Part shown: piece after piece, positions 9,129 to 48,837 of the stretch | Position numbering within the stretch: the stretch's first letter is position 1 | Layout of the letters: each line of letters starts with the position of its first letter | Assembly (NCBI GenBank): GCA_004431415.1 | Contig: QPMI01000002.1 | Location: 1-54,908 of the forward strand | Direction: 5' to 3' | DNA from: Cyanophora paradoxa CCMP329 | Taxonomy: Eukaryota > Plantae > Glaucophyta | DNA: 54,908 bases | Notes under the pieces: model-generated | Seen by the model: only the letters and a program-made list of their open reading frames with translations | Databases searched by the model: none | Told to the model about the DNA's origin: nothing | Position numbers and translations under genes: made by a program

Positions 9129-9160
9129 TGAATTCAATTATTCTGTTTTATAGAACATAT

Positions 9161-11300: not shown

Positions 11301-11360
11301 CATAATAAATAATGCGCGCCGCACGATTTTGATGCGCGCGCGCATGAAATCGAAGGTGCA

Positions 11361-13303: not shown

Positions 13304-13845
13304 GCTCATCGATATCATCCTGCATTAGGCTAATTATATAATGTTGGTTAATAATGGGGCACAGCCGCAGCATCTAGAATTTCTCCCGCAGCATCCCTGC
13401 GCATGCTGCAACCTTCAGCTGCTTGCCCTTGAATGCTCGCCAGAAATATTAATGGACACGATGAATAATCTCAGAATAGAATACAGTCGGTTAAGAATAT
13501 GATTGAATATACAAGTCACACAGAGTAGTCGAGCTCATCAGAAGCGAATCGAAAGCTGACTGAAGATATTGGACAGATATTGATGCAGATCTCAGTCTGA
13601 GTCTAGACATGCCTCATCGCGCATGCGCGAAATACAAATAATAGAACAGATGAAGGCTAAATACATCATTGAAATGGCTAACACAGACACTGGGGCTGTG
13701 CGCACACTTTCCTGACCTAGGGCCTGCAATGCGCACACTGCAAGGCTACCGCTACGTGTGAGCCTCTGCCTACATCAATATATCTATATCTAGTTATATA
13801 TAATTATATCTTATCTGTAACGGTCTCGAATTTGAAAGGCTGCGC

Positions 13846-16800
13846 CTATGATGACCCCGGGGCCTTCCAGGTCAGGACGCAGGAGGCCCGCTTCGGGTCA
13901 TGCCGATCCTGCGCGACCTTGTTCAGCTCCAGCTCGAGGTCACCCGGGGCCGCCACGCTCGGGGCCTCCTCCTCGCCTTTGTCACTTCGGGCCTTGCTGT
14001 CGTAGGGCTGCAACTCCACAACGCGGCTCGCGGCGACCGGCACTGGCCCGGAGCGAGACGAGAATGCCATCACTTGGAAGGCGGCAGTGGGTGGGACACT
14101 GTCGACTGAGAACGTGTTGAGCGCGGCTCCTTGTTTGCCGACCGGAGCCGGAGCCGCAGCAATGCGGTTCCCGTTCAGGAAGATTTCGAAGCTGCAGAAT
14201 GGGCATCATAATCAGCCCCGCTAACGAACGCGAGCAGCAATCAATCAATGCACCTCGTCAAGCGGTCCTTGGACGTCACCTTCGGAGTGTTCCAGAGCAG
14301 CTTTGCGCGGGATCCGTTGACTCGCGTCGGCCGCGCAGTCAGGTGAATCCCTGTGGCAGTATTCGAAGCCACACCCATAGAGAGGCTGTACGACGGGGGG
14401 CCAGAGGCGCCGCCAGCATTCACTGCATAAACATCAAGGATGGCGTTCGCATCGAACTCCACATCGGTGATCTCGAAAGAATGCTGCGTCCGCGGAACCG
14501 TCCCAATATTCTCGCCGTTCCGACGGATTACGTAGTAGGCAGGAAGAAGCGGGAAAAGCGACAGCGCCGGCGCTGCAGGTGCCGGAGTCGGAATTGCCGC
14601 TGCAGCCACAACCGTCGCAGCAGTGGCGGATTCTCCCAATAGAAGTCCTGCACCGTTGAAGGATGTCGAGGAGCGACGGTGTCTGGATCCATTGAACGCC
14701 CCGTCATGGACGCTATGGCCGGCTGAAGTACTCATTGTCCAACCGGGACCGGAGAGCGAGCCACTACGGGCGCCCAAGATCCGCGAGCCCGAGATCGGCA
14801 CAGGCGTGCTCGACAGCGTGGCGCCTGACGCGAACACCGCCACCACCTCCGCCACCGCACCCGACGGCAGGCTCTTTGCCTCGAAACCGTTCATCGCGAT
14901 TCCCGACGGCGGCAGCGTCGCGACGACCTGGCCGTTCACCAGCAGCTTGTAGAGAGTCACTGTATCAGACGCAGCAGGCGTGTTCCACGAGAGCTGCGCT
15001 GACGAGCCGTTCGACGCGGTAGGCACCGCCTTAAGGGTGATGCCACTGTTCGGGTCCCGGGCGATGCCAGCGATGAGCGGCTTCGACTCGGCTCCGCTGG
15101 CGCCGTCCACTGCCACCACGACAAATGTCGACACCAAGCCCTCGCAAGGTCCGGCACCTCCACCGACGTTTGCGTCCCCGGCACCCTCGCAATCTCAACG
15201 CCGTCGCGCAGCACACGGTGCGCAAGCGGCGGGCCCGTCGTCGGCAGCGACCACGAGAGCGTGCCCGTCGTGCCGCCGAACATGCCGGACGCGACATCCA
15301 CCAGCTGCAGGTTCGTGGGCGCCGTCGACTTGCGGGCGGCCCGAACGCCAAACCCGCTGCCGCCGCCTCCCGCCGAGATCGGCACAGGCGTGCTCGACAG
15401 CGTGGCGCCTGACGCGAACACCGCCACCACCTCCGCCACCGCACCCGACGGCAGGCTCTTTGCCTCGAAACCGTTCATTGCGATTCCCGACGGCGGCAGC
15501 GTCGCGACGACCTGGCCGTTCACCAGCAGCTTGTAGAGAGTCACTGTATCAGACGCAGCAGGCGTGTTCCACGAGAGCTGCGCTGACGAGCCGTTCGAAG
15601 CGGTAGGCACCGCCTTAAGGGTGATGCCACTGTTCGGGTCCCGGGCGATGCCAGCGATGAGCGGCTTCGACTCGGCTCCGCTGGCGCCGTCCACTGCCAC
15701 CACGACAAATGTCGACACCAAGCCCCTCGCAAGGTCCGGCACCTCCACCGACGTTTGCGTCCCCGGCACCCTCGCAATCTCAACGCCGTCGCGCAGCACA
15801 CGGTGCGCAAGCGGCGGGCCCGTCGTCGGCAGCGACCACGAGAGCGTGCCCGTCGTGCCGCCGAACATGCCGGACGCGACATCCACCAGCTGCAGGTTCG
15901 TGGCGCCGTCGACTTGCGGGCGGCCACAATTGCAACGCCAAACCCGCTGCCGCCGCCTCCCGCCGAGATCGGCACAGGCGTGCTCGACAGCATGGCGCCT
16001 GACGCGAACACCGCCACCACCTCCGCCACCGCACCCGACGGCAGGCTCTTTGCCTCGAAACCGTTCATTGCGATTCCCGACGGCGGCAGCGTCGCGACGA
16101 CCTGGCCGTTCACCAGCAGCTTGTAGAGAGTCACTGTATCAGACGCAGCAGGCGTGTTCCACGAGAGCTGCGCTGACGAGCCGTTCGACGCGGTAGGCAC
16201 CGCCTTAAGGGTGATGCCACTGTTCGGGTCCCGGGCGATGCCAGCGATGAGCGGCTTCGACTCGGCTCCGCTGGCGCCGTCCACTGCCACCACGACAAAT
16301 GTCGACACCAAGCCCCTCGCAAGGTCCGGCACCTCCACCGACGTTTGCGTCCCCGGCACCCTCGCAATCTCAACGCCGTCGCGCAGCACACGGTGCGCAA
16401 GCGGCGGGCCCGTCGTCGGCAGCGACCACGAGAGCGTGCCCGTCGTGCCGCCGAACATGCCGGACGCGACATCCACCAGCTGCAGGTTCGTGGGCGCCGT
16501 CGACTTGCGGGCGGCCCCAACGCCAAACCCGCTGCCGCCACCTCCCGCCGAGATCGGCACAGGCGTGCTCGACAGCGTGGCGCCTGACGCGAACACCGCC
16601 ACCACCTCCGCCACCGCACCCGACGGCAGGCTCTTTGCCTCGAAACCGTTCATCGCGATTCCCGACGGCGGCAGCGTCGCGACGACCTGGCCGTTCACCA
16701 GCAGCTTGTAGAGAGTCACTGTATCAGACGCAGCAGGCGTGTTCCACGAGAGCTGCGCTGACGAGCCGTTCGACGCGGTAGGCACCGCCTTAAGGGTGAT

Positions 16801-19800
16801 GCCACTGTTCGGGTCCCGGGCGATGCCAGCGATGAGCGGCTTCGACTCGGCTCCGCTGGCGCCGTCCACTGCCACCACGACAAATGTCGACACCAAGCCC
16901 CTCGCAAGGTCCGGCACCTCCACCGACGTTTGCGTCCCCGGCACCCTCGCAATCTCAACGCCGTCGCGCAGCACACGGTGCGCAAGCGGCGGGCCCGTCG
17001 TCGGCAGCGACCACGAGAGCGTGCCCGTCGTGCCGCCGAACATGCCGGACGCGACATCCACCAGCTGCAGGTTCGTGGGCGCCGTCGACTTGCGGGCGGC
17101 CCCAACGCCAAACCCGCTGCCGCCGCCTCCCGCCGAGATCGGCACAGGCGTGCTCGACAGCGTGGCGCCTGACGCGAACACCGCCACCACCTCCGCCACC
17201 GCACCCGACGGCAGGCTCTTTGCCTCGAAACCGTTCATCGCGATTCCCGACGGCGGCAGCGTCGCGACGACCTGGCCGTTCACCAGCAGCTTGTAGAGAG
17301 TCACTGTATCAGACGCAGCAGGCGTGTTCCACGAGAGCTGCGCTGACGAGCCGTTCGACGCGGTAGGCACCGCTTTGAGGGTGATGCCACTGTTCGGGTC
17401 CCGGGCGATGCCAGCAATGAGCGGCTTCGACTCGGCTCCGCTGGCGCCGTCCACTGCCACCACGACAAATGTCGACACCAAGCCCCTCGCAAGGTCCGGC
17501 ACCTCCACCGACGTTTGCGTCCCCGGCACCCTCGCAATCTCAACGCCGTCGCGCAGCACACGGTGCGCAAGCGGCGGGCCCGTCGTCGGCAGCGACCACG
17601 AGAGCGTGCCCGTCGTGCCGCCGAACATGCCGGACGCGACATCCACCAGCTGCAGGTTCGTGGGCGCCGTCGACTTGCGGGCGGCCCCAATTGCAACGCC
17701 AAACCCGCTGCCGCCGCCTCCCGCCGAGATCGGCACAGGCGTGCTCGACAGCGTGGCGCCTGACGCGAACACCGCCACCACCTCCGCCACCGCACCCGAC
17801 GGCAGGCTCTTTGCCTCGAAACCGTTCATCGCGATTCCCGACGGCGGCAGCGTCGCGACGACCTGGCCGTTCACCAGCAGCTTGTAGAGAGTCACTGTAT
17901 CAGACGCAGCAGGCGTGTTCCACGAGAGCTGCGCTGACGAGCCGTTCGACGCGGTAGGCACCGCCTTAAGGGTGATGCCACTGTTCGGGTCCCGGGCGAT
18001 GCCAGCGATGAGCGGCTTCGACTCGGCTCCGCTGGCGCCGTCCACTGCCACCACGACAAATGTCGACACCAAGCCCCTCGCAAGGTCCGGCACCTCCACC
18101 GACGTTTGCGTCCCCGGCACCCTCGCAATCTCAACGCCGTCGCGCAGCACACGGTGCGCAAGCGGCGGGCCCGTCGTCGGCAGCGACCACGAGAGCGTGC
18201 CCGTCGTGCCGCCGAACATGCCGGACGCGACATCCACCAGCTGCAGGTTCGTGGGCGCCGTCGACTTGCGGGCGGCCCCAACGCCAAACCCGCTGCCGCC
18301 ACCTCCCGCCGAGATCGGCACAGGCGTGCTCGACAGCGTGGCGCCTGACGCGAACACCGCCACCACCTCCGCCACCGCACCCGACGGCAGGCTCTTTGCC
18401 TCGAAACCGTTCATCGCGATTCCCGACGGCGGCAGCGTCGCGACGACCTGGCCGTTCACCAGCAGCTTGTAGAGAGTCACTGTATCAGACGCAGCAGGCG
18501 TGTTCCACGAGAGCTGCGCTGACGAGCCGTTCGACGCGGTAGGCACCGCCTTAAGGGTGATGCCACTGTTCGGGTCCCGGGCGATGCCAGCGATGAGCGG
18601 CTTCGACTCGGCTCCGCTGGCGCCGTCCACTGCCACCACGACAAATGTCGACACCAAGCCCCTCGCAAGGTCCGGCACCTCCACCGACGTTTGCGTCCCC
18701 GGCACCCTCGCAATCTCAACGCCGTCGCGCAGCACACGGTGCGCAAGCGGCGGGCCCGTCGTCGGCAGCGACCACGAGAGCGTGCCCGTCGTGCCGCCGA
18801 ACATGCCGGACGCGACATCCACCAGCTGCAGGTTCGTGGGCGCCGTCGACTTGCGGGCGGCCCCAACGCCAAACCCGCTGCCGCCGCCTCCCGCCGAGAT
18901 CGGCACAGGCGTGCTCGACAGCGTGGCGCCTGACGCGAACACCGCCACCACCTCCGCCACCGCACCCGACGGCAGGCTCTTTGCCTCGAAACCGTTCATC
19001 GCGATTCCCGACGGCGGCAGCGTCGCGACGACCTGGCCGTTCACCAGCAGCTTGTAGAGAGTCACTGTATCAGACGCAGCAGGCGTGTTCCACGAGAGCT
19101 GCGCTGACGAGCCGTTCGACGCGGTAGGCACCGCTTTGAGGGTGATGCCACTGTTCGGGTCCCGGGCGATGCCAGCAATGAGCGGCTTCGACTCGGCTCC
19201 GCTGGCGCCGTCCACTGCCACCACGACAAATGTCGACACCAAGCCCCTCGCAAGGTCCGGCACCTCCACCGACGTTTGCGTCCCCGGCACCCTCGCAATC
19301 TCAACGCCGTCGCGCAGCACACGGTGCGCAAGCGGCGGGCCCGTCGTCGGCAGCGACCACGAGAGCGTGCCCGTCGTGCCGCCGAACATGCCGGACGCGA
19401 CATCCACCAGCTGCAGGTTCGTGGGCGCCGTCGACTTGCGGGCGGCCCCAATTGCAACGCCAAACCCGCTGCCGCCGCCTCCCGCCGAGATCGGCACAGG
19501 CGTGCTCGACAGCGTGGCGCCTGACGCGAACACCGCCACCACCTCCGCCACCGCACCCGACGGCAGGCTCTTTGCCTCGAAACCGTTCATCGCGATTCCC
19601 GACGGCGGCAGCGTCGCGACGACCTGGCCGTTCACCAGCAGCTTGTAGAGAGTCACTGTATCAGACGCAGCAGGCGTGTTCCACGAGAGCTGCGCTGACG
19701 AGCCGTTCGACGCGGTAGGCACCGCCTTAAGGGTGATGCCACTGTTCGGGTCCCGGGCGATGCCAGCGATGAGCGGCTTCGACTCGGCTCCGCTGGCGCC

Positions 19801-22800
19801 GTCCACTGCCACCACGACAAATGTCGACACCAAGCCCCTCGCAAGGTCCGGCACCTCCACCGACGTTTGCGTCCCCGGCACCCTCGCAATCTCAACGCCG
19901 TCGCGCAGCACACGGTGCGCAAGCGGCGGGCCCGTCGTCGGCAGCGACCACGAGAGCGTGCCCGTCGTGCCGCCGAACATGCCGGACGCGACATCCACCA
20001 GCTGCAGGTTCGTGGGCGCCGTCGACTTGCGGGCGGCCCCAACGCCAAACCCGCTGCCGCCACCTCCCGCCGAGATCGGCACAGGCGTGCTCGACAGCGT
20101 GGCGCCTGACGCGAACACCGCCACCACCTCCGCCACCGCACCCGACGGCAGGCTCTTTGCCTCGAAACCGTTCATCGCGATTCCCGACGGCGGCAGCGTC
20201 GCGACGACCTGGCCGTTCACCAGCAGCTTGTAGAGAGTCACTGTATCAGACGCAGCAGGCGTGTTCCACGAGAGCTGCGCTGACGAGCCGTTCGACGCGG
20301 TAGGCACCGCCTTAAGGGTGATGCCACTGTTCGGGTCCCGGGCGATGCCAGCGATGAGCGGCTTCGACTCGGCTCCGCTGGCGCCGTCCACTGCCACCAC
20401 GACAAATGTCGACACCAAGCCCCTCGCAAGGTCCGGCACCTCCACCGACGTTTGCGTCCCCGGCACCCTCGCAATCTCAACGCCGTCGCGCAGCACACGG
20501 TGCGCAAGCGGCGGGCCCGTCGTCGGCAGCGACCACGAGAGCGTGCCCGTCGTGCCGCCGAACATGCCGGACGCGACATCCACCAGCTGCAGGTTCGTGG
20601 GCGCCGTCGACTTGCGGGCGGCCCCAACGCCAAACCCGCTGCCGCCGCCTCCCGCCGAGATCGGCACAGGCGTGCTCGACAGCGTGGCGCCTGACGCGAA
20701 CACCGCCACCACCTCCGCCACCGCACCCGACGGCAGGCTCTTTGCCTCGAAACCGTTCATCGCGATTCCCGACGGCGGCAGCGTCGCGACGACCTGGCCG
20801 TTCACCAGCAGCTTGTAGAGAGTCACTGTATCAGACGCAGCAGGCGTGTTCCACGAGAGCTGCGCTGACGAGCCGTTCGACGCGGTAGGCACCGCTTTGA
20901 GGGTGATGCCACTGTTCGGGTCCCGGGCGATGCCAGCAATGAGCGGCTTCGACTCGGCTCCACTGGCGCCGTCCACTGCCACCACGACAAATGTCGACAC
21001 CAAGCCCCTCGCAAGGTCCGGCACCTCCACCGACGTTTGCGTCCCCGGCACCCTCGCAATCTCAACGCCGTCGCGCAGCACACGGTGCGCAAGCGGCGGG
21101 CCCGTCGTCGGCAGCGACCACGAGAGCGTGCCCGTCGTGCCGCCGAACATGCCGGACGCGACATCCACCAGCTGCAGGTTCGTGGGCGCCGTCGACTTGC
21201 GGGCGGCCCCAATTGCAACGCCAAACCCGCTGCCGCCGCCTCCCGCCGAGATCGGCACAGGCGTGCTCGACAGCGTGGCGCCTGACGCGAACACCGCCAC
21301 CACCTCCGCCACCGCACCCGACGGCAGGCTCTTTGCCTCGAAACCGTTCATCGCGATTCCCGACGGCGGCAGCGTCGCGACGACCTGGCCGTTCACCAGC
21401 AGCTTGTAGAGAGTCACTGTATCAGACGCAGCAGGCGTGTTCCACGAGAGCTGCGCTGACGAGCCGTTCGACGCGGTAGGCACCGCCTTAAGGGTGATGC
21501 CACTGTTCGGGTCCCGGGCGATGCCAGCGATGAGCGGCTTCGACTCGGCTCCGCTGGCGCCGTCCACTGCCACCACGACAAATGTCGACACCAAGCCCCT
21601 CGCAAGGTCCGGCACCTCCACCGACGTTTGCGTCCCCGGCACCCTCGCAATCTCAACGCCGTCGCGCAGCACACGGTGCGCAAGCGGCGGGCCCGTCGTC
21701 GGCAGCGACCACGAGAGCGTGCCCGTCGTGCCGCCGAACATGCCGGACGCGACATCCACCAGCTGCAGGTTCGTGGGCGCCGTCGACTTGCGGGCGGCCC
21801 CAACGCCAAACCCGCTGCCGCCGCCTCCCGCCGAGATCGGCACAGGCGTGCTCGACAGCGTGGCGCCTGACGCGAACACCGCCACCACCTCCGCCACCGC
21901 ACCCGACGGCAGGCTCTTTGCCTCGAAACCGTTCATCGCGATTCCCGACGGCGGCAGCGTCGCGACGACCTGGCCGTTCACCAGCAGCTTGTAGAGAGTC
22001 ACTGTATCAGACGCAGCAGGCGTGTTCCACGAGAGCTGCGCTGACGAGCCGTTCGACGCGGTAGGCACCGCTTTGAGGGTGATGCCACTGTTCGGGTCCC
22101 GGGCGATGCCAGCGATGAGCGGCTTCGACTCGGCTCCGCTGGCGCCGTCCACTGCCACCACGACAAATGTCGACACCAAGCCCCTCGCAAGGTCCGGCAC
22201 CTCCACCGACGTTTGCGTCCCCGGCACCCTCGCAATCTCAACGCCGTCGCGCAGCACACGGTGCGCAAGCGGCGGGCCCGTCGTCGGCAGCGACCACGAG
22301 AGCGTGCCCGTCGTGCCGCCGAACATGCCGGACGCGACATCCACCAGCTGCAGGTTCGTGGGCGCCGTCGACTTGCGGGCGGCCCGAACGCCAAACCCGC
22401 TGCCGCCGCCTCCCGCCGAGATCGGCACAGGCGTGCTCGACAGCGTGGCGCCTGACGCGAACACCGCCACCACCTCCGCCACCGCACCCGACGGCAGGCT
22501 CTTTGCCTCGAAACCGTTCATTGCGATTCCCGACGGCGGCAGCGTCGCGACGACCTGGCCGTTCACCAGCAGCTTGTAGAGAGTCACTGTATCAGACGCA
22601 GCAGGCGTGTTCCACGAGAGCTGCGCTGACGAGCCGTTCGACGCGGTAGGCACCGCCTTGAGGGTGATGCCACTGTTCGGGTCCCGGGCGATGCCAGCGA
22701 TGAGCGGCTTCGACTCGGCTCCGCTGGCGCCGTCCACTGCCACCACGACAAATGTCGACACCAAGCCCCTCGCAAGGTCCGGCACCTCCACCGACGTTTG

Positions 22801-25800
22801 CGTCCCCGGCACCCTCGCAATCTCAACGCCGTCGCGCAGCACACGGTGCGCAAGCGGCGGGCCCGTCGTCGGCAGCGACCACGAGAGCGTGCCCGTCGTG
22901 CCGCCGAACATGCCGGACGCGACATCCACCAGCTGCAGGTTCGTGGGCGCCGTCGACTTGCGGGCGGCCCCAATTGCAACGCCAAACCCGCTGCCGCCGC
23001 CTCCCGCCGAGATCGGCACAGGCGTGCTCGACAGCGTGGCGCCTGACGCGAACACCGCCACCACCTCCGCCACCGCACCCGACGGCAGGCTCTTTGCCTC
23101 GAAACCGTTCATCGCGATTCCCGACGGCGGCAGCGTCGCGACGACCTGGCCGTTCACCAGCAGCTTGTAGAGAGTCACTGTATCAGACGCAGCAGGCGTG
23201 TTCCACGAGAGCTGCGCTGACGAGCCGTTCGACGCGGTAGGCACCGCTTTGAGGGTGATGCCACTGTTCGGGTCCCGGGCGATGCCAGCGATGAGCGGCT
23301 TCGACTCGGCTCCGCTGGCGCCGTCCACTGCCACCACGACAAATGTCGACACCAAGCCCCTCGCAAGGTCCGGCACCTCCACCGACGTTTGCGTCCCCGG
23401 CACCCTCGCAATCTCAACGCCGTCGCGCAGCACACGGTGCGCAAGCGGCGGGCCCGTCGTCGGCAGCGACCACGAGAGCGTGCCCGTCGTGCCGCCGAAC
23501 ATGCCGGACGCGACATCCACCAGCTGCAGGTTCGTGGGCGCCGTCGACTTGCGGGCGGCCCCGGCCGACATAGACACAGGCCGATCAGTCGATGGCTGCG
23601 ACGGGCCGATCGTAACAACTTCAACCCGCCCCGCAGGACCGAGGGGCTTCTGGGACAAAGTAGTTGCCCGTCCCATGTTTCTTGTGTAGATGATTGCCGC
23701 GGCAAGGAGTGCAATCGTAATGCTTCCCACCACCACCGGGACTGCCACAGCTGCTGGATGCACGCCCGAGCCTTCTGGCTCCGTTGTCTGCCAGTTGAAG
23801 TAGGAACCTTGCGCGGCTGCACCCGTCGGCGGCAGAGCTGCGCCTGGAGGAGACTCTTGCACTGCCTGCGTGATCACCTCCCCAATGCCAACTGCGGTGT
23901 CGATTGTCAGCTCGTCGGTAATTATAATATAAACCCATGCTTATGAGGGAATGTCGCACTTGCGAAAGGCGTGAGATGATTGCATGAGGCAACGGCGGTG
24001 ATGACCGCCATGTCGAGGATCATGGTGACATTTCCGCTGTGCGGACAGAAGGCATTAGAACTGTGCTTGCTGCATATTGCGAAAGCAAAGCAGGCGACAG
24101 TTACCAGCTGATCCAGATTTTGTTGATCTTGTCGTAATATATTAGATCTAGCTTTTGGTTGGGGTTGATGAGCTCTCCATTTGGCATCCGCAGAGGGATT
24201 TGGAACTGCGCTCAAGATCACAAATGGTTCGCAAATCAAAGGACCGTAATCTAGATCTAGTTCGCTTTTTAATGATATAAAATCATCACACCGTGATAGG
24301 CTCGGAAAGGTTGGACACTTCGAGCCCTACAACATCCACCTCCATCACATAGCTTGAGACATTGCTGCGCGGTAAACGCGTAGCGCTTAGAGCGTGCCTT
24401 CCACTTGACTTTGCATGCGGCGCCGGCGCACTACTTTACGACGGAGTTTGTGCCGTTGAGAGTGCCCTCCGTGGCCTCCGGGTATGGTCCGCGTGGGTAG
24501 ACGTACACGGTCAGTTGCGTACCATCGGTGCCGTTCAGAGATCTCGAGAGCTTTTGGAGCTCAGGAGGCACGACCAAACCGGCGGTCTCATTGCGGGATC
24601 CGCCGACATTGAAGTCGCCCTGGCCCTCTTGGTTGTGACAAACTTGGCCGGTGAAGATGGCGACGCGGAGGCCCGAGCTGACGGACGGGCTCGCGCCGCA
24701 CACGCCGCAGCGGACCGCCTTCGACGCGAAGGTCTTGAACATGCGCATGACGGAGTCGGCGAACTGGGATGTGTCAGTTCCGTTTGCATTCTCAGCAAGC
24801 CACCACGAAGAGCCAACGAAGGTGTCTGCACAGCTCTCGCATGAGCACACAAAGCGCTAGCGGGTATGATAGCGATTCTCGCCTTCACTTCACGCACCGG
24901 CTCCAGCAATGAGGAGCTCGTTGACATCAGCGGAATCGTCACAAGGATTTAAAGCGCTGTACAAAGAGTGCATCGCATCAGCCAGCCCGGTCTGGAGCTC
25001 CGACGAACCAGTGCTGGAAGTTGGAAAAATGAGACGGTGCCCAAAGCGGCCGTGTCGACGTCACGTTCAGTGAAGACGAACCGTGTGACGACGCGCGTCA
25101 GCGCGGTGCTGACCGAGACGGCCTGGACGAGCTGAAACTTGGAGGAGCGGTTGTTCGCCCCGACAGCTGCAGGTGCCACGGTGCAGCCCCATGATCAGCT
25201 GCAGGTTCGGCAACCCACGCACAGAGCAATGAACTGGCGCACAGCTAATAACCTTGAGCATCGGTGCCAGAGTCTCTTCTATTTTTCTGCAATCGATTAT
25301 TAGTGGCTGAAAGTATTATCAAAGAAATCGCTGTCCGCAAAACGTGCGGACTTCGTAGAGTCGGGGTCCCGATCCAGGTGCGACACCGTTCGATAAGCGG
25401 TGTCTGTGCCGGCCCCGATGTAACTGTCCAAAATGTCTGCGCGAAATCAAACTCCATTCGAGACCCCTGGCCAGCAGCCGCAGCTTCGATTCTCATGCTT
25501 TCAAGTGCGCACCGGAAATCGTGACCGCGGTGTTTCCGATGGCGGCGAGAGATGCCTCCAGGTCGCCGTCGCTGTCGGTGACGGCGATGGACCTCGAGCC
25601 GATGCCCAGGATGTCGAGCACGGAGGATTTCAGCTGGACCGGGTCCAGCCCCTCCACGCTCTGCTCCAGATCGGACGTCGCGTTCAAGTAATACTCTGCA
25701 GCAAGGGTGTGAGAATGTGATCGAAAATCGGAGCGGGGATTGGTGTATTCTACCCGTAGAAGCGTTGTAGATGTCTTTCACGATAATCACCATGCGAACT

Positions 25801-34800: not shown

Positions 34801-37800
34801 TGCCTACGTTGCCACCGCCGACTGCTGGGCTGTACGGCACAGTGACGATGATGACTCCTGGCACGCTGCCCGTGTTTGGCAGGGAGAAAGTGACCTGCTA
34901 GTTCTTAGTAAAAGCGTGCAGAACAGACTCTGCAGATCTAGAACTCGCACGTTTCCACCAGCCATGATAACGTAAGGTGTTGGCGAAGACGAGTAAGTGC
35001 CCTTCGGCGTCACGATAACGGGGGCTAGGAAGTCCGAAGGCAAAAGCGGCTTGCTCTGGCCGATGCGGATGATGGTGCAGTCAACCAGATTCCGAGGGAT
35101 GGTCTTGTCGTAGAAGCACCACAGCCGCGCCGCTGCGCAAAGAAAGTTCGAATTTGCTTATAGATTAATAATATTTTGATACAAAAGAGCGCGCACAGAT
35201 GAACGTGAGATCCGCGGGCCCGGCAGCGAGCGCCGACTGGAACTGCAGAGGTTCAATCCAATTCATCCAGATGGTGATGTTCGGCGTCAGTGGAATATCG
35301 TGAGCACGAATGGGAATCGTAACGACGTCGCCCAACGCGTCAGTGGTAATATTCGGAAGCGGTTCCAGCTGAGGAGGGAACGTGTTGGTCCAGATAAAGT
35401 CCGGGGGTATACCGGAGGGGAGTTCGGGAGGGTCAGAGCCGTGCAGTTGGCGACCCGGGCATGGGCGAGCCGGGTTGGTGCGCAGACGAGCCCGCGGGGC
35501 TCGTCCAGCAGCACGACCTCGATGACTTGGTTGGCGAGGTAGACGCCGTCCAGAGGCTTCACGTCTGGATCGGACAGGTCGGACGAGGCGGTGATGAAGA
35601 GGCGGGAAGGGTCCGTGTCGTTCGTGTCGAGGCCGCCAAAGATGATCGTGAACTTTCCGGTCGCGCTTTCGCGCGCAACAAAGATGAGCTCGACCAGGTC
35701 CGGTCGCGTGACATTCACGACGCTCTGGATCTGGATATTCGTTGTGAACTCGATGGGAAGGAGGAACGGCTCACGCTGTGACGGCAGTCAGCAAGGTACC
35801 GGTGCTCTAACAGAAGACTTCCACAGACCGACACATCGAAGCGCGAGAAGCTGCCTTTCGCAACGCGACAGCGGTCGCCGCGCTTCACGTTGCACTCCAC
35901 CTCAAACGGCTGCAGTGTAATCCTCTTGGGGCTCGACGGGATGTGCTTGCCGCCAACGTAGTACCGCACGTCGATGACGAGAGCGTTCGAGCCGGGGACG
36001 GCGCTGGCGAGATCGCCCTGCAATCCATCCGTCAGTCCCTAGATTGCAACACACGGAGCTCAAAGCCCGCCTGAATGTCCAGGATGACGTTCGACCCGTC
36101 GCTTGTCGCTTTGAATATTTTTCCTGAGAACGCGGACACGCAAGATCAGCAAAAGAAGAGAAACTATCTGCTAGCGGAAAACGTCAACACCTCCGGAGAT
36201 TGTTATGTTGAAATCGTCCGGGAGGAGCCCAACCTTCATAAAGGGCTGCCCAAAAACGCATCAAATCGATTTTTTGTTCCGCAACAAAATTAAAGCGAAG
36301 CGCAAGCGTGAGCCACAAGACGCACAGGAGAAATGATGCAGCGGACATAGCAGGTGGCGCTGACGGGAAAGTGGCGTTAGCAACGACGAGAGCATCCGCA
36401 GCAGAACCACCTCGATTCCAACACGAACCAGATGAGCACTCTGGAGCATTCGAACGTCTCAACTTGAAACACTACCAGCTGCCTGGAGAATGCCGTCCTC
36501 TCGGGCTCGGAGGGCGGCTTCAGGAACCAAGCTTTGTCCTTGCAAGAGCGGCACATGTCTCCCCATACCGCGAGGTATGCGTTCGTGTCATTGTTCGCGC
36601 GCTGCCCGTTCAGCTCTATCGAATCGTACATCTGCACACCCGTGTTAATCAAAACAGAGAAGGACAAGGCAGATGAATGTGGTCGCGCGCAAAATACGTG
36701 CATGCACGTGTAATTATAGAGCGAAGAGGTTGCATGAGCATTCACGTGATCATGGTCATAAGCGCACCTTATGCGTGTATAAAAGTTGGACATGCTGCAC
36801 AATATCCAGTCCTGTTCAGCGGTCAGTTGACCTAACGGGCAAATCTAGACGCTCCGTGCGTACCCATGACAACTGTGCCTCGCATCTCGAAGGTCGTGCT
36901 CCTGACCGGCTTGCCGGGGTATAGCGTATAGTAGGCGGGCGGGGTACGTATTGTGAGGCTTCCCAGAGATGAAAGTGTCGCGTACTCTTCCGCGGGCTCC
37001 ACCAGACCCTCCGCGCTCAGAACGCCCATGAGGGGGTGGTGTACGAGGTCAGGTCCAGGCTGTTGGGTCCGAGTTCTCGAACGGCACCATGTAGAACAGG
37101 GCGGTCTCTCCCACGGGGATTCGAATGCCCGCCTTGGGTGTGCTGAGCCCACCAAGGACAACCCGGAAGGTGAACGAAGCGAAGGTCGACATATCCGATC
37201 TGGAGTTCCGGGATCAAAGGTCGCGATCGAAGAAAACCCGCTGCAGCACGTTGATATGCAAACCCGTATTTGAAGTCGATCCTAACGTTTCCGGTCTTCC
37301 CTGGTATAGCTCGAACGGACCAGACCATCTGAACCGAAAATCAAACCGAACTCTTGTATTCAGCCAAACGTGTTTATTGCAGCTAAGGACTACCGTGTCC
37401 TGGAAAGTTGTCCCTTGCAAGAAATTCATTGGCCAGTTGGCGATGACAGAGGTATCGTTTCTGGAAGGTATCCGTATACGTAGAGTGTCAGCACAAGTGT
37501 TAAATCGAAAATTTAGAATAGCCAAAAAATGCAAGCCGCACGAATTGAGGTAGACGTCAGTTCCACCTAAAGGAGAGCTGACTGCAGTCTTCCGCACCTG
37601 CAAATGACGGTTCAGTGTGTATGAGTAATTTTCATGACCATGCGCAAGCGCTTGATCACACTCTGATTCAAAAGTGCGCACCCAGCACGCTGCATAAAAG
37701 TTGCTGCGCCTGCGCAAGTTGATTATGTGTAACTTCGTGATCGACGATCCTGTACAAAGATCTAGAGCTCGAGGATTTTGCGAATTCAAAGGCGCTCACG

Positions 37801-40800
37801 CAGCCAGAACTTGCGGATAGCACCCCCACGACTGAGCCGCCACAATGTTGAACGTCACCTAATGATGTAACGGGCGGGTTTAAGTTGGGACAGAGAAATG
37901 AATCGCAACGGGGGCTCACGTCTTTTCCAGCATCAGTCTGCAGCGGGATGCATCAATCAAATGGAGGGTGCATTGTATGTGTTGAAGAACGCACCTGGAA
38001 CCCATCGCTATATGGTGCGTATGTGCTGTTGAACACGATGCGAATAACGTTCTCTCCCCTTGTCGGATTCGCAAGACTCTGGTATCTGCTCCGTTGCAAC
38101 GCGCGATGAAAAAAATGAGTTTGGAAATCGAGCAACATGTACAGTACACTGTATACAACGCACTCAAAACTGAATCGCGGGAAGCATCCAGATGGTGTCT
38201 GGTAGGACGAACAGCAGAACGCTCTCGTGTTATTCTCGCAAGTCAGGGGGCTTGTTTCAACAGGCTCGGGTAGTTTCAAAGCGGCTAGTGTTGAATTTTT
38301 GTAGTAGGTAGTGGAATTGAAGCAGCTGTACGCCGCTGTCGCGGTGATGACCGAGTTCGCACAATCGACCCTCTTGTACCTTGTACCTATAGGATCGACG
38401 TACAAGAGGTCGAATTCCTCGCATCTGGTGACATTGATGGGGAGCGTCTGCCCCGCCATGCTGCGGCACGGCGCGTCCGGGGGGGAGCGCATCACGTCCG
38501 TCGAGTTCACCGCCAGATTTGTGAACGTTCCCTCAAATATCGTTGCGTTTGCTTTGATGGGGCCGATGATCTGGCCGCGGGGCAGAATCGGCGACTCGTT
38601 TTGCGCCTCCAGGTAGCACGAAAGCTTCGCTCCAGCTGCGCGGCAGTCGCACATCAAAGAAGCGTTCATCGAAAGACACTCTGATTAATAATTTAATTCG
38701 TGCCGCACCGCCAATGCGGAAAGGCTTGGCCACCGAGTTGTAGACTACGGGTTTCAGCGTCCCGTGGTCAAGTCTAATAAAAAGCAAAACGTTCGGTACT
38801 CCAGCACGCTGTTAACCGCCCACCCGTCCCTACAAATGGATCATATTATTTTTGCGAGAGCTACCAGCACTTCTTGAAGTGATGGGCTTGTAATTACCAG
38901 AGAACCTTTCCGAGAGACGTTCCAAAGGGTCCAGGAAACCCAACCTGCGGTCGCCAGACGAATAACATAATATAAATATCCACAACTTGGAGAAGCGTCG
39001 CGAGCGAGGAGCATACCGTGATTTTGTCGTATCTCCACGTTCCTCGCGCAGCGATCTGCACGAGTCCGTCTCAGAAAGCGTATGGTATACGTTGGAATTG
39101 AAGGATCAATGCCAGGATGAAGCAAGGGTAAACGCACCATCTGGAAACTGGGGTTATCACGCCAGCTGTCGCCGGTCGGTATTTCGAATTCGGTGGTCCC
39201 CCTGTCCCCTCCGATCCAATCGAAGTCTCTCTCAGCGAGCTGGAAGTTCGGTGTGTTTTCTGGCGGGGTCCAAGCCACCCGGTTCATGCGGCACTCCTGG
39301 GGGCCGTGTACGGTTAGACATGCGCAGAGCCCGATTGAGGATGCGGAGCGCCTGCGCACTCCTCTTCCGTAGCCCGTCACAAGATCCCAGGTTCCATTGT
39401 AGCAGGGGTGGTGGATGGTGAGGGGGTGATCTAGAAGGGAAAGCGTCGTAGATGGTGTACGTGTTGGAGAACCACAAACTGTGACCCGCAGAGGCTGGGT
39501 ACAAGGACGTTTTAGGTCGAATACAGAACGCGTAAACCCCCATGACAAGAGGCCGTATAAGGAACTGCGCAGGCAACCAAACATCAGAGCACTGCCGGCA
39601 AACTTCAATATTAATGCAGCGCAATTGCGAAAAAGCCCAGACCGTGGGGGGCGACCGTGAGCTTGCTGCATCGGTTGCGTTCGGCAGCACCAGCATACCA
39701 GCTGGTGGGGGTTCCACCATGTAGATCCTGTCGCGCCATCCGGCACGCAGCGCTGAGGAGCTGTCCAGTTGAAGTCGTTCATAACAAAACTCGAGACGCT
39801 CTCTGAAAGCAGGCCGCCGCTCCCCTTCTGGAGCCCGGCTCCGGTGGTATCTTGCCGCAGGACGCACGTGTGGTTATAAATAGAGTTCAACCAATTGCGC
39901 CTACGGTGCACATCCGTCTCCGGTCGATTGAATTTCGGTCTCGGCTGTCAAACGGGGACCTTCAGCCACCATGCAGCTGCAAACTACAAATCTCAGGATG
40001 GTGGCGTCCTCACCTCCGGCGTGCACTCAAAGTTCACCCCGTGGGCTGTTCACGAAGGGCAGGCGCGCTCGTGAGTTCAGCGGCGTTGCAGGACATTGCG
40101 ATGCCTGTCTCGCTCACCGTAAAGCAATGAGATATTGAATGTCAGAGGCTGCGCCCAGATCTGAAGCGACGTTGAGCCTCCGTTAGTAACGTATTGTGTG
40201 TGATTTCATTCACTTGCATACCGTGTCCACATCAGGGCCGGCGACGGCGGCAGTCCACCCGACGGCAATAACAGTGACGGCGATTTTCTTCGGAACTCCC
40301 AGCGTGACGGTCACGCTGTTTGTTTTTCCCGATACGATGGACGTAAAATTGCGTCGAGGGCTTGCGCCTGCACTCATAGACTCTCGATTAGACGTTTCCT
40401 ATGCACCTTGCAAGGCACGCAATCGTAATATAAGAAGTCGAACCTTCGTTCGTCGTCGCTCCGCCTGCGCAACCGCGCCCCAGATAGAAGACACCGTCGC
40501 CCAAAGTGTTCGGACCACGGCAGTTCGTGTCCCCAAAAGATCGCTGCGACGTGCTCCGCCGTCAGCGAAGTATTATCGTCAACAACATAACGAGTATAGT
40601 TCTAATTTTACCAGGATGCTAGAGTAGTACGTCCCGGTGAACCACGAAAGCTGCAGCGTAGGAGCGCCGGCGTCTGCGCCAAAGATGTCATTCTTCCGCA
40701 AACCTGCAAAGTATTCGAGGCGGGCACCTGGCTCAATCCAGCATGTCACGTTATCAGCTGCACACGGAAGGTGGAATCCGGAATCGTAAGTGGCAGACGC

Positions 40801-43800
40801 GAGCTTGAGCTCGAGAGAAAACTTAACGTGCACGCACCGACGTAGACGCGAGTCTTGTCGCACACGAGGCGGGCCGAAACAACAATGAGGGTCCGCGGTG
40901 AGTTGGTAACATGCATCGGGTTTGAATTTGCCGCATATTTTCCCCGCGTGATGGTGTAGTGCACATTCAGTTGCGCGTTCGTTGACCCGTTCCTTGGACC
41001 GAATATAGTGTAGGTAATCTGGGCGGGAAAAAGCGAAGGGAATATTTTGAATGTTATAATTAATCGCGTCAAGATACTAAAACGACAGAATTCTGAGACT
41101 CCAACTGCTCATGTTCACCAGATGATCGGACACACGCTCGACAAGGTACTCCTCGTAGCGAGTGCCTTGCGCATCAGAGAACCTGGGTATGTTGCCGTAA
41201 GTTGGAGACAGGAATAAACTCAGCCTTTGTGGAGAAAAGATAATACCAGAAGTCCGCCCTGTCCAGGGATCCTCCCGCCGTCGAGCCGGTGACATTGCAC
41301 ACCAAGCGCGTCCGAGCCTGGCGAAGAAAAGAAAACTAAGCTATGCGCGCAAGGCTGCGCTTGCAGCTGGACGAGCAGGAAATGGCACCAGCAGGGAACT
41401 TCTGTCGCACGTTACCGAAGCCGCTGCGGGGCCGGGCGGGTTTTTAGCTTGCAAATACTGACAACTAGAACCGAAATTCGACGCGCGAGCGGACCGATGA
41501 TTGACGTATTCGTGGGAGAGGAAAGGACGGGGAACTCTCCAGCACCTGGGGAGAGTGCGCTGGACGCGAAACGCATGCGGAATAGCACCCAACGGGCCGC
41601 CGGCGTTGCTTGCGACACGACCGAGAAGCGCAAGTTGGTAGGCCCGTCGTTGGCGAGAGAGCCAATCGTCAGGCCCAGCTGCAGCAGGGAGCGGCGGGAA
41701 GAGCTTGGGCCGGTCAACACGACGTCCGTGGGCAGCAGTCTCGACCCGTCCGTCAAAACCTGGCAGAAGATGCCGGGCTCCGGTCGGGATCTTCGGCGGG
41801 CAATCCAGCAGAACATCTGGAGAAAACAGCGGATCATAACATCAGAAAGAGGCTTTGGAAGCGAACAAAGTCGTGATCATGACACGCACCGCCAAGGACG
41901 GTGACGCGAAGGGGAGAGTTGGCGAGCGGAGCGCCGAGCAGGGAGACGGTGAAGTTGACCGCCTTGCCATTGTAGATGGCAAAATCCTCTGCCAGCGCGG
42001 AGAACTGCAGGTTTCCATTGTTCACGCTCGATACAGGTGAGCGTTTCGCGATGCGCTACGAGCGCGACGCGCGCAATCAGAAATCAATCCCTGTGTCGCT
42101 GAAATAGGAAAAGCAAAGGAGAGGGCACCGGGATGCGGACGTTGTACGCCGTTCCATCTTCCATAATCAGGGAGCGAGGGTTATGTCGGACGGGATGAGG
42201 TCGGCAGAGCTCGCGCCCTTTGTAACTGCGACGAGAGTGTAAGCGCAGAGTGGTCACGAGATGCGGGACATTACAAGCAGCACCGGTGCAATTGAAGGAG
42301 TTCTTCATGCGGATGCGGCACTCCGATGGGCTTAGTCCTGCTTGATTGCATGTGCATGACATGGTAGCCGAGACCTGACCATGACAAGAGGCGCGCGATG
42401 CCGCTCGGCCGTGAGTCGAAATGTAAAGCATGCGTAGACAACGGTTTCGTACGCACCACGCCGACGAATAGTTTTGCAGCCTTTGCGTTGTCCTGGGGTG
42501 TGCCTGGCTGCAAGTACCTGATTCCGACCTCGGGGCCGGACGCCCCTCCAAACGCCGTCGTGTACGAGAAGGTGATCCCTCCACCGCTTGCAGCAGCCGC
42601 AACGGGCGACGAAATAGTTCCGGTCGAAGCGTAAGCGGAGAAGACGGATGGATCGAGATCCGGCAACCCTGAGACAAAAGCGACAAGTTCGGTTTCAGAA
42701 TTCGGTCACGTGCACGTGCACGCGATTCAGATTCGGACCGTTGCCCTTGTCAGCGAGCATTGCAGGACTTGTCCGGGCGGGGCTCGAGGAGGGGTGCACC
42801 GCAGGTTGTTCACACCTAGCAAGGTCGATCGAGCGCGGCACAGGCGCTGGTATGATGCATATATATATATACTGAGGGCGCTCACCTGTGACCGACGCCG
42901 AGACCGAGGGCCCACCTCCAGATATGAAGGGGGCGAAGATAGGGCGGATGCCGGCCCGCGTCGGATAGGCGTAGAAGCTCACGCCGCTTCCGGAGGCCGC
43001 GACGTTCGAGTACGTGGATTCCGGCGGCCCGCCGATGGCGGCGTCCATATCACTCACTTGAATCGACGGAGTGCCGCCGGAGGGCTGCTGGTGCACTCCG
43101 CGTACACTGGCGCATCCACCAGAAGCACGAGGGACGTTGGTGTGCAGGTGATAGTGGAGACGATAATGTCGAAGGACAGGGGCGAGCCCTGGACGGCGCC
43201 CCTCCGATGGCCGTGGCGTACGAGAGCGTGACTTGCTTGCCGGTGGTGTACGTAGCGAGGTTCGCGGCTGTGACTTTGAACTCCGCCTGCGCGTGCACCG
43301 CAGGCCGACATCAAATTGTTTGTTCCAAAGCCGCTACATGAGGTAAGAGCCTGCGTTTTGTTCTTACCTTAGAGCCGTCTGCATTGACGGAGAACGAGCC
43401 AATGGTGAGTGCAGACGTGTCAGCCGAATTAATAATGAAAAGATCTGAAGCGTCTTGCGGGATCGGCCCACTGCCCAGAAGCACTTAGTCAGGACTGCAG
43501 CTGCTTCTACTGAACCAGGACGTTAAATGCGCACGAATCCGCTGTTGGCGTGAGTGTGCAGGTCGCGCTACAGTCGCGTGGATTCTGCGGCAGGAATTAG
43601 GTGCCGGCAAGATGCTGACATGATCATTGATTGTTTGCTTGCCTCATTGTGTTGCAACTGATCTGAACGCCTGCACATTATCATGCGCGTGCGCAGCGCG
43701 AGCAGTGCAGTCGGTCATCGAGATCGATTATAAACCGCATGCGCAGCAATCGCGACTGCGCACGGAGGAACGAGATGAGGACGCTCGCGACTGACGCGAT

Positions 43801-46800: not shown

Positions 46801-48837
46801 CAGGGACCCGATCTGCACAGACGTATCTCAGAGATCTCGACGAGCGTTCCGGGATCCAAGACCCAGTTGCGTGTCAGGCGTACATTCGGCTGTAGTCCGT
46901 CCTCTCGCATACGCGAACGCGTATGGCTGGCCATCCGCTTGGAGGCGGAGCGGCCGGTGCTTCACACGGTACTCGGCGAGAGAGCCTCCCGGTCGACGGA
47001 GAGCATTGCGGAAGAGTACGTGAGGTTCCCATTCGCGGTCCGGTCTGCAAGCGCAAGCGCAGTCGGCAACGGCGCCGGCGCGGATCTGGAGCCGCAATCG
47101 CATGCGCAATCGCATGCGCGCACTGAGGCGATGTAAAGGCGGTACGGTCCCGGGTGGTCGGCTCGGAAAGCCTGCACCTGCAGCGGTGACGAGTCGGGCC
47201 AGGCCTAGGGAACAACATGTACATGTACAGCGAATGAAACCAACCGAGGGATGCAAGTCGAGCCGATTCGGATCGATCACGTCTGTGCGCCGTAATCAAA
47301 TCGTATTCACACAGACCGACTTCGGAGGGAAGCGCGGACCCGCGACCACATAGGTCCCGTGCAGGCGAATGTTGTCCACGCTCGCATTCTTGCCGCCGGG
47401 TAAAGTGCAGCGTGAAGTTAAAAGCCGCGCCGTTCATGGTCGCGAGCGTGAGGTTTGGGGACGGGACCAGCGATGTAGCAGTTGGCAAGTGCTGCGTACG
47501 TATACGTTAAAGTCGCGTGATTAGCGCTGATGTATTGGAAGTTTCATGACGTCGGAATGGTCTTGATCTAGAATCTATCTGAAAGGACGCACAGAACCGC
47601 AAAGTCACGTGTGGATCCCCTTGAGAAGTTGAGGGCGGCGTGTGATTGACTGTAAACCTGCAGATACAATGAAGCGGAGATTCGGAGTCAGCCCAACAAC
47701 AGAGTCAGTATATATACTGACGCCGAAGCCGAATTGATCGCAATTTAAATCACGGTAAACGTGGTAGAAACGCCCTGTTAGGTTTTGAAAAAAGTGAAAA
47801 TGGCACAGGTTAGGTCGAACGATTGAGGATTGGAGTGCCATTTGAACGAGAGTTCAAAAGCACCGGAAAAGCGGGGTCCGCGTCGACAATCCGGGTGAGC
47901 GTTGGGGCCACGTCGTACTGACCTGCACGGAAGCGGCATTCGTAATCAATTGATGAATACCGGACATGAACACTCAATTACTCGGACGAATTCGAAATGC
48001 GCGTAGTGAGACTCACCAGGCGTCAACCGGGCGTCCTCGTGTAGAGACTTGGCCCGCCGATCAGAGCGAGCTGTATGCTGCCGCAGAACGCTGGATCTCC
48101 GCACATCCAATACAGCTCACATTCGCCGTCCGCTCGGATCAGTGTCTGCGCGGTGGCCTTCGTTGAGAGCTAGAACGTCACAGCACACCCAGCATGCAGT
48201 CACAGCATGCAGATAAAATGACACTTTGCGGCACCTCGGAAGATGGGGTCTGCCGACGACTGGCCCTGATCTGCGCGCGCATGCGATCTCGAAAAATTAA
48301 GAGGCGCCGCCGAATACGTAAAACTGAAGCTCGACCAAACTGGCACGGTAAAATGGGGAGCAAACCATGTGCATATCAGCCGGTCTCCATATATACACGC
48401 ACCGCACGTTACACCACGCGGTCTGGAGTGATAACGCCGCCAAGCAGGAAGCTATCGGCGGAGGTGGCGACACGGTCAATGGTGTGAAAACTGGGGCGAT
48501 CAGACGAGTCAACTACGGGCGATGGCGATTGCGCATGCGCAGGACAGTCGGTCCAAACAATAACCATAACCAGTCTAGCTGTAGCTATAGGCCCGCACCC
48601 AGCCGATATTACGAAGCAGTTGCAATCGCGACAGCTTACCTTGGCAGCGCCCAGCAGGATGCTTGAAGAACACAGACTAGCAAGAGCACAGCAACAAATC
48701 GCCTGTGCATCCGATGCAGCACAGGCCCTCGCGGTCGCCCGCCTGATCACCTGATCCTGATCCGCCGCTGTGCGGGGCACAGTACTAGTACTAGTGCCCC
48801 CTTGCGGATTTGAAGGTTGGCGCGTAAGGATGCTCAT
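13846..48837 (-). CDS. Giant multi-exon single-pass membrane protein, polycystin-1/REJ-like: N-terminal Cys-rich region, ~20 filamin-like Ig modules, REJ, GAIN/GPS, TM, ~30 FnIII
   Basis: Continuous minus-strand exon-like blocks separated by ~55-80 bp GT/GC-AG introns. Hydrophobic leader (..LVMVIVWTDCPAHA) near 48520-48660 and many NxS/T sequons. In-frame splices checked at introns 23892-23959 and 14192-14253; stop TAG at 13846-13848. That everything 5' of ~36 kb belongs to the same transcript is inferred. Confidence 0.7.
14789..23562 (-). repeat. 15 near-identical 585/591-bp coding repeats (195/197 aa, two FnIII-like domains each) with a 1761-bp higher-order trimer
   Basis: Unit markers at 14980, 15564, 16154, 16739, 17324, 17915, 18500, 19085, 19676, 20261, 20846, 21437, 22022, 22607, 23198. 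FnIII motifs APTNLQL..GTLSWSLP..HRVLRDG..VPDL..FVVVAVD and ITLKAV..AQLSWNTP..YKLLVNG. Two 1-bp deletions (~15140, ~15902) break the frame. Confidence 0.97.
23686..24360 (-). other. GAIN/GPS autoproteolysis motif followed by a single transmembrane helix
   Basis: VSNLSEPI (~24295-24320), YYDKINKIW (~24112-24140), SCNHL|TPFA (23961-23987). Splices in frame to AAVAVPVVVGSITIALLAAAIIY (23686-23754), which is followed by basic residues (TR..R). Confidence 0.85.
25700..28330 (-). other. REJ domain-coding region
   Basis: SGTGRRPLTYYWSC; YRLSVYARNYLG; FILDASLSRDPD; FKYRWEF; RAVLPRGEGEDRTVRMVIIVKDIYNAS. These are typical REJ signatures. Confidence 0.8.
29000..43300 (-). other. ~20 divergent ~100-aa Ig-like modules, pattern (A/V)xLxCxxxRxxxGxxxxCxVxxxxxSPxLLxSDF ... 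H(I/V)xGSPxxV
   Basis: Starts include EATVSCSPIRVVIGAVITCLVSRTESSPALLASDL, NATLRCPPRVGLASNFSCVLVSPTGSAPLLPSDF and DAVLNCVPRTIPGRLVPCNVTRAGNSPALQLSDF. Ends such as IDVRYYVGGKHIPSSPKRITL and HINGSPVRF resemble filamin-type Ig. Most lie in 29000-36000, a few in 41400-43300. Confidence 0.75.

Follow-up and report, generated by a model that had tools for sequence, protein, structure and literature searches.

The window analysed here, that is, the whole 54,908-nt stretch of contig QPMI01000002.1 (assembly GCA_004431415.1) from the glaucophyte Cyanophora paradoxa CCMP329, carries a giant receptor-like gene on its minus strand. The encoded protein combines repeated ectodomain modules, a REJ domain and a GAIN-like region ending in a GPS motif with one predicted membrane helix and a very long array of fibronectin type III (FN3) domains. 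The gene is transcribed and its mRNA spliced, and one transcript contig links the exons for REJ, GAIN/GPS and the helix with the FN3 array. The transcripts confirm that this architecture exists, and as an arrangement of domains it is new. Its central elements, in the order of transcription, are:

25513-28531, minus strand: REJ domain in many short exons, RNA-confirmed and colinear with the REJ regions of paralogues
25013-24898, 24825-24432, 24364-24292, 24205-24105 and 24036-23960, minus strand: GAIN-like region in five exons, colinear with paralogues, with four RNA-confirmed introns
23961-23984, minus strand: GPS motif C-N-H-L|T-P-F-A, with expected cleavage between 23973 and 23972
23892-23959, minus strand: 68-nt phase-1 intron from the GPS exon to the helix/FN3 exon, GT..AG with a CTGAC branch site and an RNA joint
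23686-23754, minus strand: predicted single transmembrane helix AAVAVPVVVGSITIALLAAAIIY, 23 residues, Kyte-Doolittle value 2.52, with TRNMGR after it
14760-23559, minus strand: 15 tandem units, FN3 pairs with Gly-rich linkers in a 591/585/585-bp super-repeat
13846-14744, minus strand: two diverged terminal FN3 domains and a partial FN3, with a modelled intron at 14253-14192, the end ..CVLTWKAPGSS and a stop codon at 13848-13846

Transcripts across the GPS, helix and array exons

Contigs of four public runs were aligned to positions 23450-29400 of the window. Two of these runs, X5 and X6, stem from one study of 2020 and their kind is not recorded; X1 dates from 2012 and X16 belongs to a different study. 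The one 4902-nt contig of X5 and the 3260- and 3324-nt contigs of X6 skip 26 short segments, all of which read CT..AC on the plus strand and are thus GT..AG introns on the minus strand. X1 provides a 26-kb DNA contig that is colinear with the genome and has zero joints. Since this contig is unspliced and colinear while those of X5 and X6 skip GT..AG segments, the latter two represent spliced RNA. The decisive joint, 23891|23960, is present in the contigs of both X5 and X6 and absent from the X1 DNA contig. The GPS exon closes at 23960 with a single codon base, the next exon starts at 23891, and the join reads ..TPFA-I-GIGEV.. in frame. X16 adds two of the joints at low depth.

The transcripts extend well into both flanks of this joint. 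In an X6 contig, 2176 nt of the helix/FN3 exon (332 unique nt and about three array units) adjoin the GPS exons, and RNA depth is 42-96 where the spliced transcript passes from the GPS exons into the array. Upstream, the X5 contig spans the array start, GPS, GAIN and REJ and continues with 841 nt of contig past 29400, and the 3324-nt X6 contig has 1287 nt past 29400, reaching ~31.3 kb on the exon model. Exon phases agree throughout the six exons confirmed by RNA between 25013 and 23560, and for each confirmed exon a single stop-free frame fits. The RNA thereby excludes a division into several genes over ~31.3 to 21.6 kb. The single hydrophobic helix and the long repeat behind it lie in one open frame, 23940-15544 on the minus strand.

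REJ domain, GPS motif and GAIN-like region

The REJ domain was identified by Pfam on 26734-27375 (E=1.5e-10; 40.8 bits, cut-off 25), and REJ was the only Pfam match among 20 long minus-strand open frames of the ectodomain. A HMMER scan of 1.84 billion representative proteins with the REJ exon returned 12 matches at E up to 1e-3, seven of which are Cyanophora models, the gene's own annotated fragment g12976 included. Further members of the family are found among the predicted proteins of Cyanophora: P0005 (7652 aa), P0006 (2699 aa) and P0009 (2242 aa) have a full REJ domain (Pfam E 1e-26 to 1e-34), the motif CDHLTPF and one helix, with tails of 80-115 aa that lack FN3. The window from 33129 to 23952 is colinear with residues 41-2526 of P0006, and from 34834 it is colinear with P0007.

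In the GAIN-like region, the H-L|T cleavage triad and the hydrophobic strand that follows it are intact, the latter reading I-G-I-G-E-V across the RNA-confirmed intron. Upstream of it, a W, a Cys from the codon split by the 24105|24036 intron, a second Cys and H-L-T-P-F match the W..SCGN.T pattern of the paralogues. The cut site lies ~50 residues from the helix, so that the GPS comes immediately ahead of the first membrane helix. Language-model features that indicate GPS clusters (0.88 and 0.84) are taken as a lead only.

For the fold, residues 2190-2545 of P0006 were modelled with two exons of the window as alignment rows, yielding a model with a weak predicted local distance difference test score (pLDDT 57) that shows six helices and then strands. 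This order is the defining pattern of GAIN, a domain that directly precedes the first helix of its proteins (PMC3321182). The seven best Foldseek matches to the model among 350,542 PDB chains are all GAIN domains (E 1e-3 to 1e-2). VIA-align gave Z scores of 14.3 for latrophilin-1, 14.1 for BAI2 and 13.8 for BAI3, down to 9.9 for CELSR1, over 224-255 residues each, and the next, unrelated match reached 7.8. The GAIN-region exons of the window align colinearly to the folded P0006 region. The assignment as GAIN is thus positive by motif, positive by fold through a paralogue as proxy and negative by profile; for the fold, it is supported through a paralogue model only. Self-cleavage at the GPS is probable.

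The FN3 tail

Behind the helix, the array runs from 23559 to ~14760 as five copies of a 1761-bp super-repeat composed of units of 591, 585 and 585 bp, each encoding ~195 aa. The units are >99% identical as DNA, differing in nine single-base substitution columns, in variants of the unit junction (591 or 585 bp) and in two single-base deletions. Because they are near-identical, the array must have been amplified or homogenised very recently. It was missed by Tandem Repeats Finder because the period exceeds 500. Pfam fn3 matches three units with E=3.6e-20 and the first half of a unit (half A) alone with 2.5e-4; the second half (half B) has no Pfam match. Both halves align by BLAST to consecutive FN3 repeats of an actinobacterial protein. 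An AlphaFold2 (AF2) model of one unit (pLDDT 72) consists of two beta-sandwiches and matches tandem FN3 pairs over ~200 columns with a probability of 1.00, among them those of fibronectin, tenascin, titin and the integrin beta-4 tail (pair 1qg3). Since Pfam, the BLAST alignments of both halves and the fold make each unit an FN3 pair, the array comprises 30 FN3 domains. With the diverged domains at its end, the tail amounts to ~3,260 aa and ~32 FN3 domains, and it holds no other module or Pfam domain.

The units at 23559-14760 are closest to FN3 arrays of actinobacteria (37-47% identity, with a shared Y-R-V-L-R-D-G-V-E pattern; P0001 of Klenkia terrae was compared), and the tail module may be bacterial in origin. 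A word-based protein search with the helix and the first units returned bacterial FN3 proteins only. The search with the whole exon found annotated fragments of the array and no model that joins GPS, helix and FN3.

Two positions in the last units disturb the reading frame:

15139-15903, minus strand: two single-base deletions, CCC to CC at 15903-15902 (unit 14) and GGGG to GGG at 15141-15139 (unit 15), shifting the frame as assembled

An extra base is present after 26150, 26173, 28419 and 29361 in all runs, DNA included, and the window therefore misses single bases about once per 1.5 kb. The base at 25895 is likewise listed among the single bases that the window lacks in comparison with the DNA and RNA short-read contigs. 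The deletions in the array may be assembly errors of the same kind or may be real, and frameshifts in this contig should not, without read support, be taken as ground to infer pseudogenisation. X1 DNA depth is 80-99 over the array against 9.4 on its unique flank; this confirms a multi-copy array and suggests ~9-10 units, and GC bias may lie behind part of the gap to the 15 assembled. The irregular units of annotated models were considered as a test of the frameshifts and dropped, because such irregularities also occur where the frame of the window is open and are unreliable markers.

That this copy is decaying or mis-assembled, with real frameshifts, a truncated product and 15 identical units that are in part a product of assembly, or that the array, in keeping with the public annotation, mainly makes a separate soluble FN3 protein, appears decidedly unlikely. 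The deletions in units 14 and 15 would fit this explanation, as would the annotated tig00000022 copy, which is irregular at the same two places, the lower unit number suggested by depth, and the annotated models P0015 and P0017, which begin at a Met just after the helix. However, even after truncation the protein would keep its helix with 26 FN3 domains behind it, spliced transcripts of depth 42-96 connect the GPS exons with the array, and assembly error is plausible because the window misses single bases at no fewer than four other sites on which DNA and RNA contigs concur; the annotated irregularities, as noted, are poor witnesses.

Membrane helix and topology

The segment 23754-23686 is the only strongly hydrophobic one of the gene, with acidic residues ahead of it and R, R and K behind. 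Within 15 residues, K/R number zero before the helix and three after it, compared with four to six after it in the paralogues. The short-tailed paralogues that have a hydrophobic segment also show one strongly hydrophobic segment each, and the helix core AVPVV(L/V)G is conserved in P0005, P0006 and P0009. Hydrophobicity and Pfam searches of the tail found no second helix and no 7-transmembrane (7TM), 11TM, PLAT, kinase or channel part. The initial annotation had described a GPS exon spliced in frame to the only transmembrane segment through the intron 23892-23959, and ~30 FN3 domains behind it with no further transmembrane, kinase or channel domain. All of this holds: the splice, and with it the attachment of the array exon to the GPS exon, is present in the X5 and X6 contigs, the hydrophobic segment is single, only fn3 is found after it, and the 15 paired units account for 30 domains, to which two diverged ones are added.

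The composition of the two sides differs. In 877 RNA-confirmed residues of the ectodomain, 14 N-glycosylation sequons are observed against 6.3 expected, together with 10 Cys; an FN3 unit of 197 residues has one sequon against 1.2 expected and zero Cys. In every known case, GAIN and REJ face the lumen or the outside of the cell. One helix with its basic flank on the FN3 side, judged by the positive-inside rule, the sequon and Cys bias, the candidate signal peptide described below and the extracellular position of GAIN elsewhere make it most likely that the FN3 tail is cytoplasmic.

A very improbable alternative keeps the gene model and moves the array out of the cytoplasm: with a reversed orientation, or with a hydrophobic segment that does not span the membrane, the FN3 domains would form another rod in the lumen or outside the cell. 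An extracellular position is usual for the FN3 arrays of membrane proteins, the units are similar to FN3 arrays that actinobacteria secrete, each unit keeps one N-G-S sequon, and no RNA links the signal peptide to the gene. These points are outweighed by the known lumenal or extracellular side of GAIN and REJ and the position of GAIN directly before the first helix (PMC3321182), by the length, hydropathy and conservation of the 23-residue helix with its basic flank on the FN3 side, by the enrichment of sequons and Cys on the REJ side only, and by the lack of a second helix that could return the chain.

Extent of the gene and size of the protein

Upstream of the REJ domain, the single-pass receptor gene was followed through three further elements:

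28806-35157, minus strand: ectodomain modules colinear with P0006 and P0007, tblastn E down to 1e-41, RNA contigs up to ~31.3 kb, no match to a Pfam family
40749-42705, minus strand: two copies of the family's ~410-aa ectodomain module, found with an iterated profile from paralogue P0005
48641-48710, minus strand: candidate first exon with ATG 48710, signal-peptide-like MHRRFVAVLLLVCVLQASC.. and a GTAAGC donor at 48640, linked to the rest of the gene by modelling only

A module profile matches at 34642-33680 with E=1.9e-54. At first appearance, the P0005 module profile matches 41108-40749 (E=9e-12) and 42705-42274 (E=2e-4), in minus-strand frames only, and because of these matches the gene is supported from ~42.7 kb downward. 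The range from 42.7 to 13.8 kb is thus supported as one gene and nothing beyond it is. Above 42.7 kb there is a crude splice-aware model only, with a coding score that climbs steadily from 48.7 kb. The proposal of one gene across 13846-48837 accordingly stands for 42.7-13.8 kb, where RNA and profile matches carry it; for 43-48.7 kb, membership is putative.

A second signal-peptide-like ATG occurs at 36348 on the minus strand (MSAASFLLCVLWLTLAL..), within the modelled ectodomain, either as an alternative start or as a chance match. The 35 kb may contain more than one gene, with 43-48.8 kb and perhaps 35-43 kb belonging to a separate secreted protein and a receptor of ~6,000 aa or less with a start further downstream, which we regard as possible, if doubtful. 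Such a division would account for the end of the RNA contigs at ~31.3 kb, for direct tblastn finding no significant match above 34.8 kb, for the many tiny exons and frameshift jumps that the model needs above, and for the ATG at 36348. It is at odds with the module profile matches on the same strand at 41.1 and 42.7 kb, with the steady climb of the coding score, with the lack of any GPS, helix or AT-rich gap seen in between, and with the 6,600-7,400 aa that paralogues carry ahead of their REJ domain.

ATG 48710, whose exon encodes a convincing signal peptide, probably serves as the start codon. The start initially proposed, ATG 48837, is unlikely and encodes no signal peptide. Summing the exons of the rough model gives ~4,800 aa outside the membrane and ~3,300 aa from the helix onward, which puts the whole protein at about 8,000 aa; the earlier figure of ~10,000 aa was too high. 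At the other end, an F-box/LRR gene at 10137-13324 marks the 3' limit of the receptor gene.

Paralogues, annotation and origin of the tail

The conserved C-termini of P0005, P0006 and P0009 are hydrophobic (ITVHF, VTIAI and LHIVV). In the window, R-V-E-V-V-T-I-G at 23640-23617, 27 residues after the helix and just ahead of the array, resembles them, as though a former C-terminus had come to be read through, and for this reason the FN3 array may have been added onto an older short-tailed receptor. The short tails of paralogues with REJ, GPS and one helix likewise mark the FN3 tail as an add-on, one that seems specific to this lineage and to have been joined to an older family characterised by REJ, GAIN, one helix and a short tail. 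In P0005 (tig00020553_g10756), residues 190-6380 consist of ~15 tandem copies of the 410-aa module, most of which share 80-97% identity; judging from these repeats, the outer side of this family undergoes rapid tandem amplification too.

In the EukProt set, the REJ exon is 100% identical to C. paradoxa tig00020685_g12976 (269 aa), and the array matches g12978 (2121 aa) at 100% identity, a model that begins with a Met past the helix and has the same ..TWKAPGSS end. As REJ exon and array correspond to two different models, the public annotation cuts the gene into pieces. Because these genes are divided in the public Cyanophora annotation, comparative work based on it will overlook the architecture. 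The C-terminus ..TWKAPGSS is shared by the annotated copies P0015, P0016 and P0017. The same gene is present on two further contigs (EukProt tig00020687_g12980/g12983 and tig00000022_g4805; P0004, P0016 and P0015) with FN3 units that are 100% identical. From this identity, the copies on tig00020687 and tig00000022 are taken to be haplotigs or very recent duplicates.

Comparison with known systems

The nearest precedent is suREJ1, which has a large ectodomain with a REJ module and one membrane helix (PMC10855541); it differs in its short cytoplasmic tail and its EGF and C-type lectin modules, whereas the protein described here has a ~3,260-aa FN3 tail and ectodomain modules without a Pfam family. 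The short-tailed Cyanophora paralogues (EukProt g10756, g442 and g14231) have the same ectodomain modules, REJ, C(D/N)HLTPF and AVPVV(L/V)G helix, but end in tails of 80-115 aa with a conserved hydrophobic C-terminus and no FN3. Since suREJ1 and these paralogues already combine REJ with one helix, the novelty lies in the FN3 tail and not in the single pass. suREJ1 also carries a GPS. A literature search found no description of GAIN with one helix and an FN3 tail, and the initial view of the architecture as undescribed is therefore to be narrowed: it applies to the FN3 tail and not to REJ with one helix.

In 7TM adhesion receptors and 11TM polycystins, GAIN is known to serve as the gate. In polycystin-1 and PKD1-like proteins, too, REJ is succeeded by GAIN/GPS, and H-L|T stands directly ahead of the first helix. 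Here, in contrast, there is one helix and no 11-TM body, PLAT domain or channel-like end, and no PKD repeats were detected; lacking an 11-TM body and a PLAT domain, the protein is not a member of the polycystin-1 family. Adhesion G-protein-coupled receptors (GPCRs) such as latrophilin, BAI and GPR126 resemble it in the GAIN fold (paralogue model against 4dlq, 8oek and 4dlo, Z ~14), in a tethered hydrophobic strand after the cut and in a giant modular ectodomain. They are unlike it in that the protein has no 7TM body, leaves Pfam GPS unmatched and has one Cys pair in the GPS; with no 7TM, it is not an adhesion GPCR and has no G-protein route. In the integrin beta-4 tail and in titin, FN3 domains act as cytoskeletal linkers on the cytoplasmic side, the side predicted for the array, and the unit model matches the beta-4 pair 1qg3 and titin tandems. 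However, the FN3 domains of beta-4 number four and titin lacks a membrane anchor, whereas here ~32 FN3 domains in near-identical copies follow the helix. The link between GAIN and 7TM has been placed in stem holozoans, and GAIN itself is older (PMC12716839, PMC3321182).

Proposed architecture and function

Taken together, we favour, at a probability of roughly 0.7, one C. paradoxa gene for a giant type-I membrane protein with REJ and GAIN/GPS outside, one helix and a cytoplasmic FN3 tail. In the proposed mechanism, a signal peptide from the candidate exon at 48710 would direct a heavily N-glycosylated ectodomain of ~4,800 aa, built of repeated 410-aa modules, the REJ domain and the GAIN domain, into the lumen of the endoplasmic reticulum (ER). 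GAIN would cut itself in the ER at the intact H-L|T, 50 residues before the helix, after which the outer fragment, though no longer covalently attached, would remain clamped to the TPFAIGIG strand, the arrangement known from adhesion GPCRs and polycystin-1. The single helix would then stop transfer, leaving the FN3 pairs and their Gly-rich linkers in the cytoplasm. A structural role as spacer, tether or anchor is suggested because the tail has no catalytic or channel module. Speculatively, the FN3 chain would be a flexible rod of ~100 nm in its extended state that ties a surface receptor to cortical structures such as flattened vesicles, which in glaucophytes lie directly under the plasma membrane (PMC4593968).

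Several observations weigh against this interpretation. Pfam GPS (PF01825), searched at E up to 10, matches neither the three GPS-region exons nor the intact regions of the paralogues, no GAIN was detected with a PDB sequence profile, and the fold evidence comes from the weak paralogue model (pLDDT 57) and not from the joined exons of this gene. Continuity over 43-48.7 kb, and hence the signal peptide, derives solely from the crude exon model. As assembled, the deletions end the protein at 15544 after ~13.1 units, that is, 26 complete FN3 domains and a few residues of unit 14, and the copy number of the array is uncertain, with 15 assembled units against the ~9-10 estimated from read depth. 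In 17 other runs with the same species label, guessed to be RNA, almost none of the stretch's words occur. Cleavage, glycosylation and the side of the tail are themselves inferred from sequence features.

In a bolder version, which we consider unlikely, glaucophytes would use an ancient, pre-7TM form of GAIN signalling: a self-cleaved single-pass receptor would be coupled to the flattened cortical vesicles or the cytoskeleton by an elastic, titin-like FN3 rod of ~100 nm. Pull on the ectodomain would be read out as force on the tail or as its release, and not through a G protein or channel, and the length of the rod would be tuned by rapid tandem amplification.

An archaeplastid family that carries GAIN on a single helix reveals what the domain was joined to outside animals. 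An expressed gene with ~32 FN3 domains on the far side opens GAIN function to study without a GPCR or a channel. If the proposed topology is true, a membrane-anchored cytoplasmic FN3 chain of such length is without precedent, and it could account for the attachment of the glaucophyte cortex to the plasma membrane.

Neighbouring sequences

The gene that follows downstream, at 10137-13324 on the minus strand, begins with a Pro-rich stretch and encodes an F-box-like motif (E=4e-6), leucine-rich repeats (LRRs; E=1.6e-5) and an ankyrin-like stretch. Positions 1-9800 of the window form an AT-rich block of 38-41% GC, compared with 54-69% elsewhere, with open reading frames on the plus strand. These include a C1q domain at 4276-4650 (E=4e-6) and a S-adenosylmethionine decarboxylase-like sequence at 8176-8580 (E=6e-11). 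The block had been flagged as viral in the initial annotation, which put a junction near 9739-9832.

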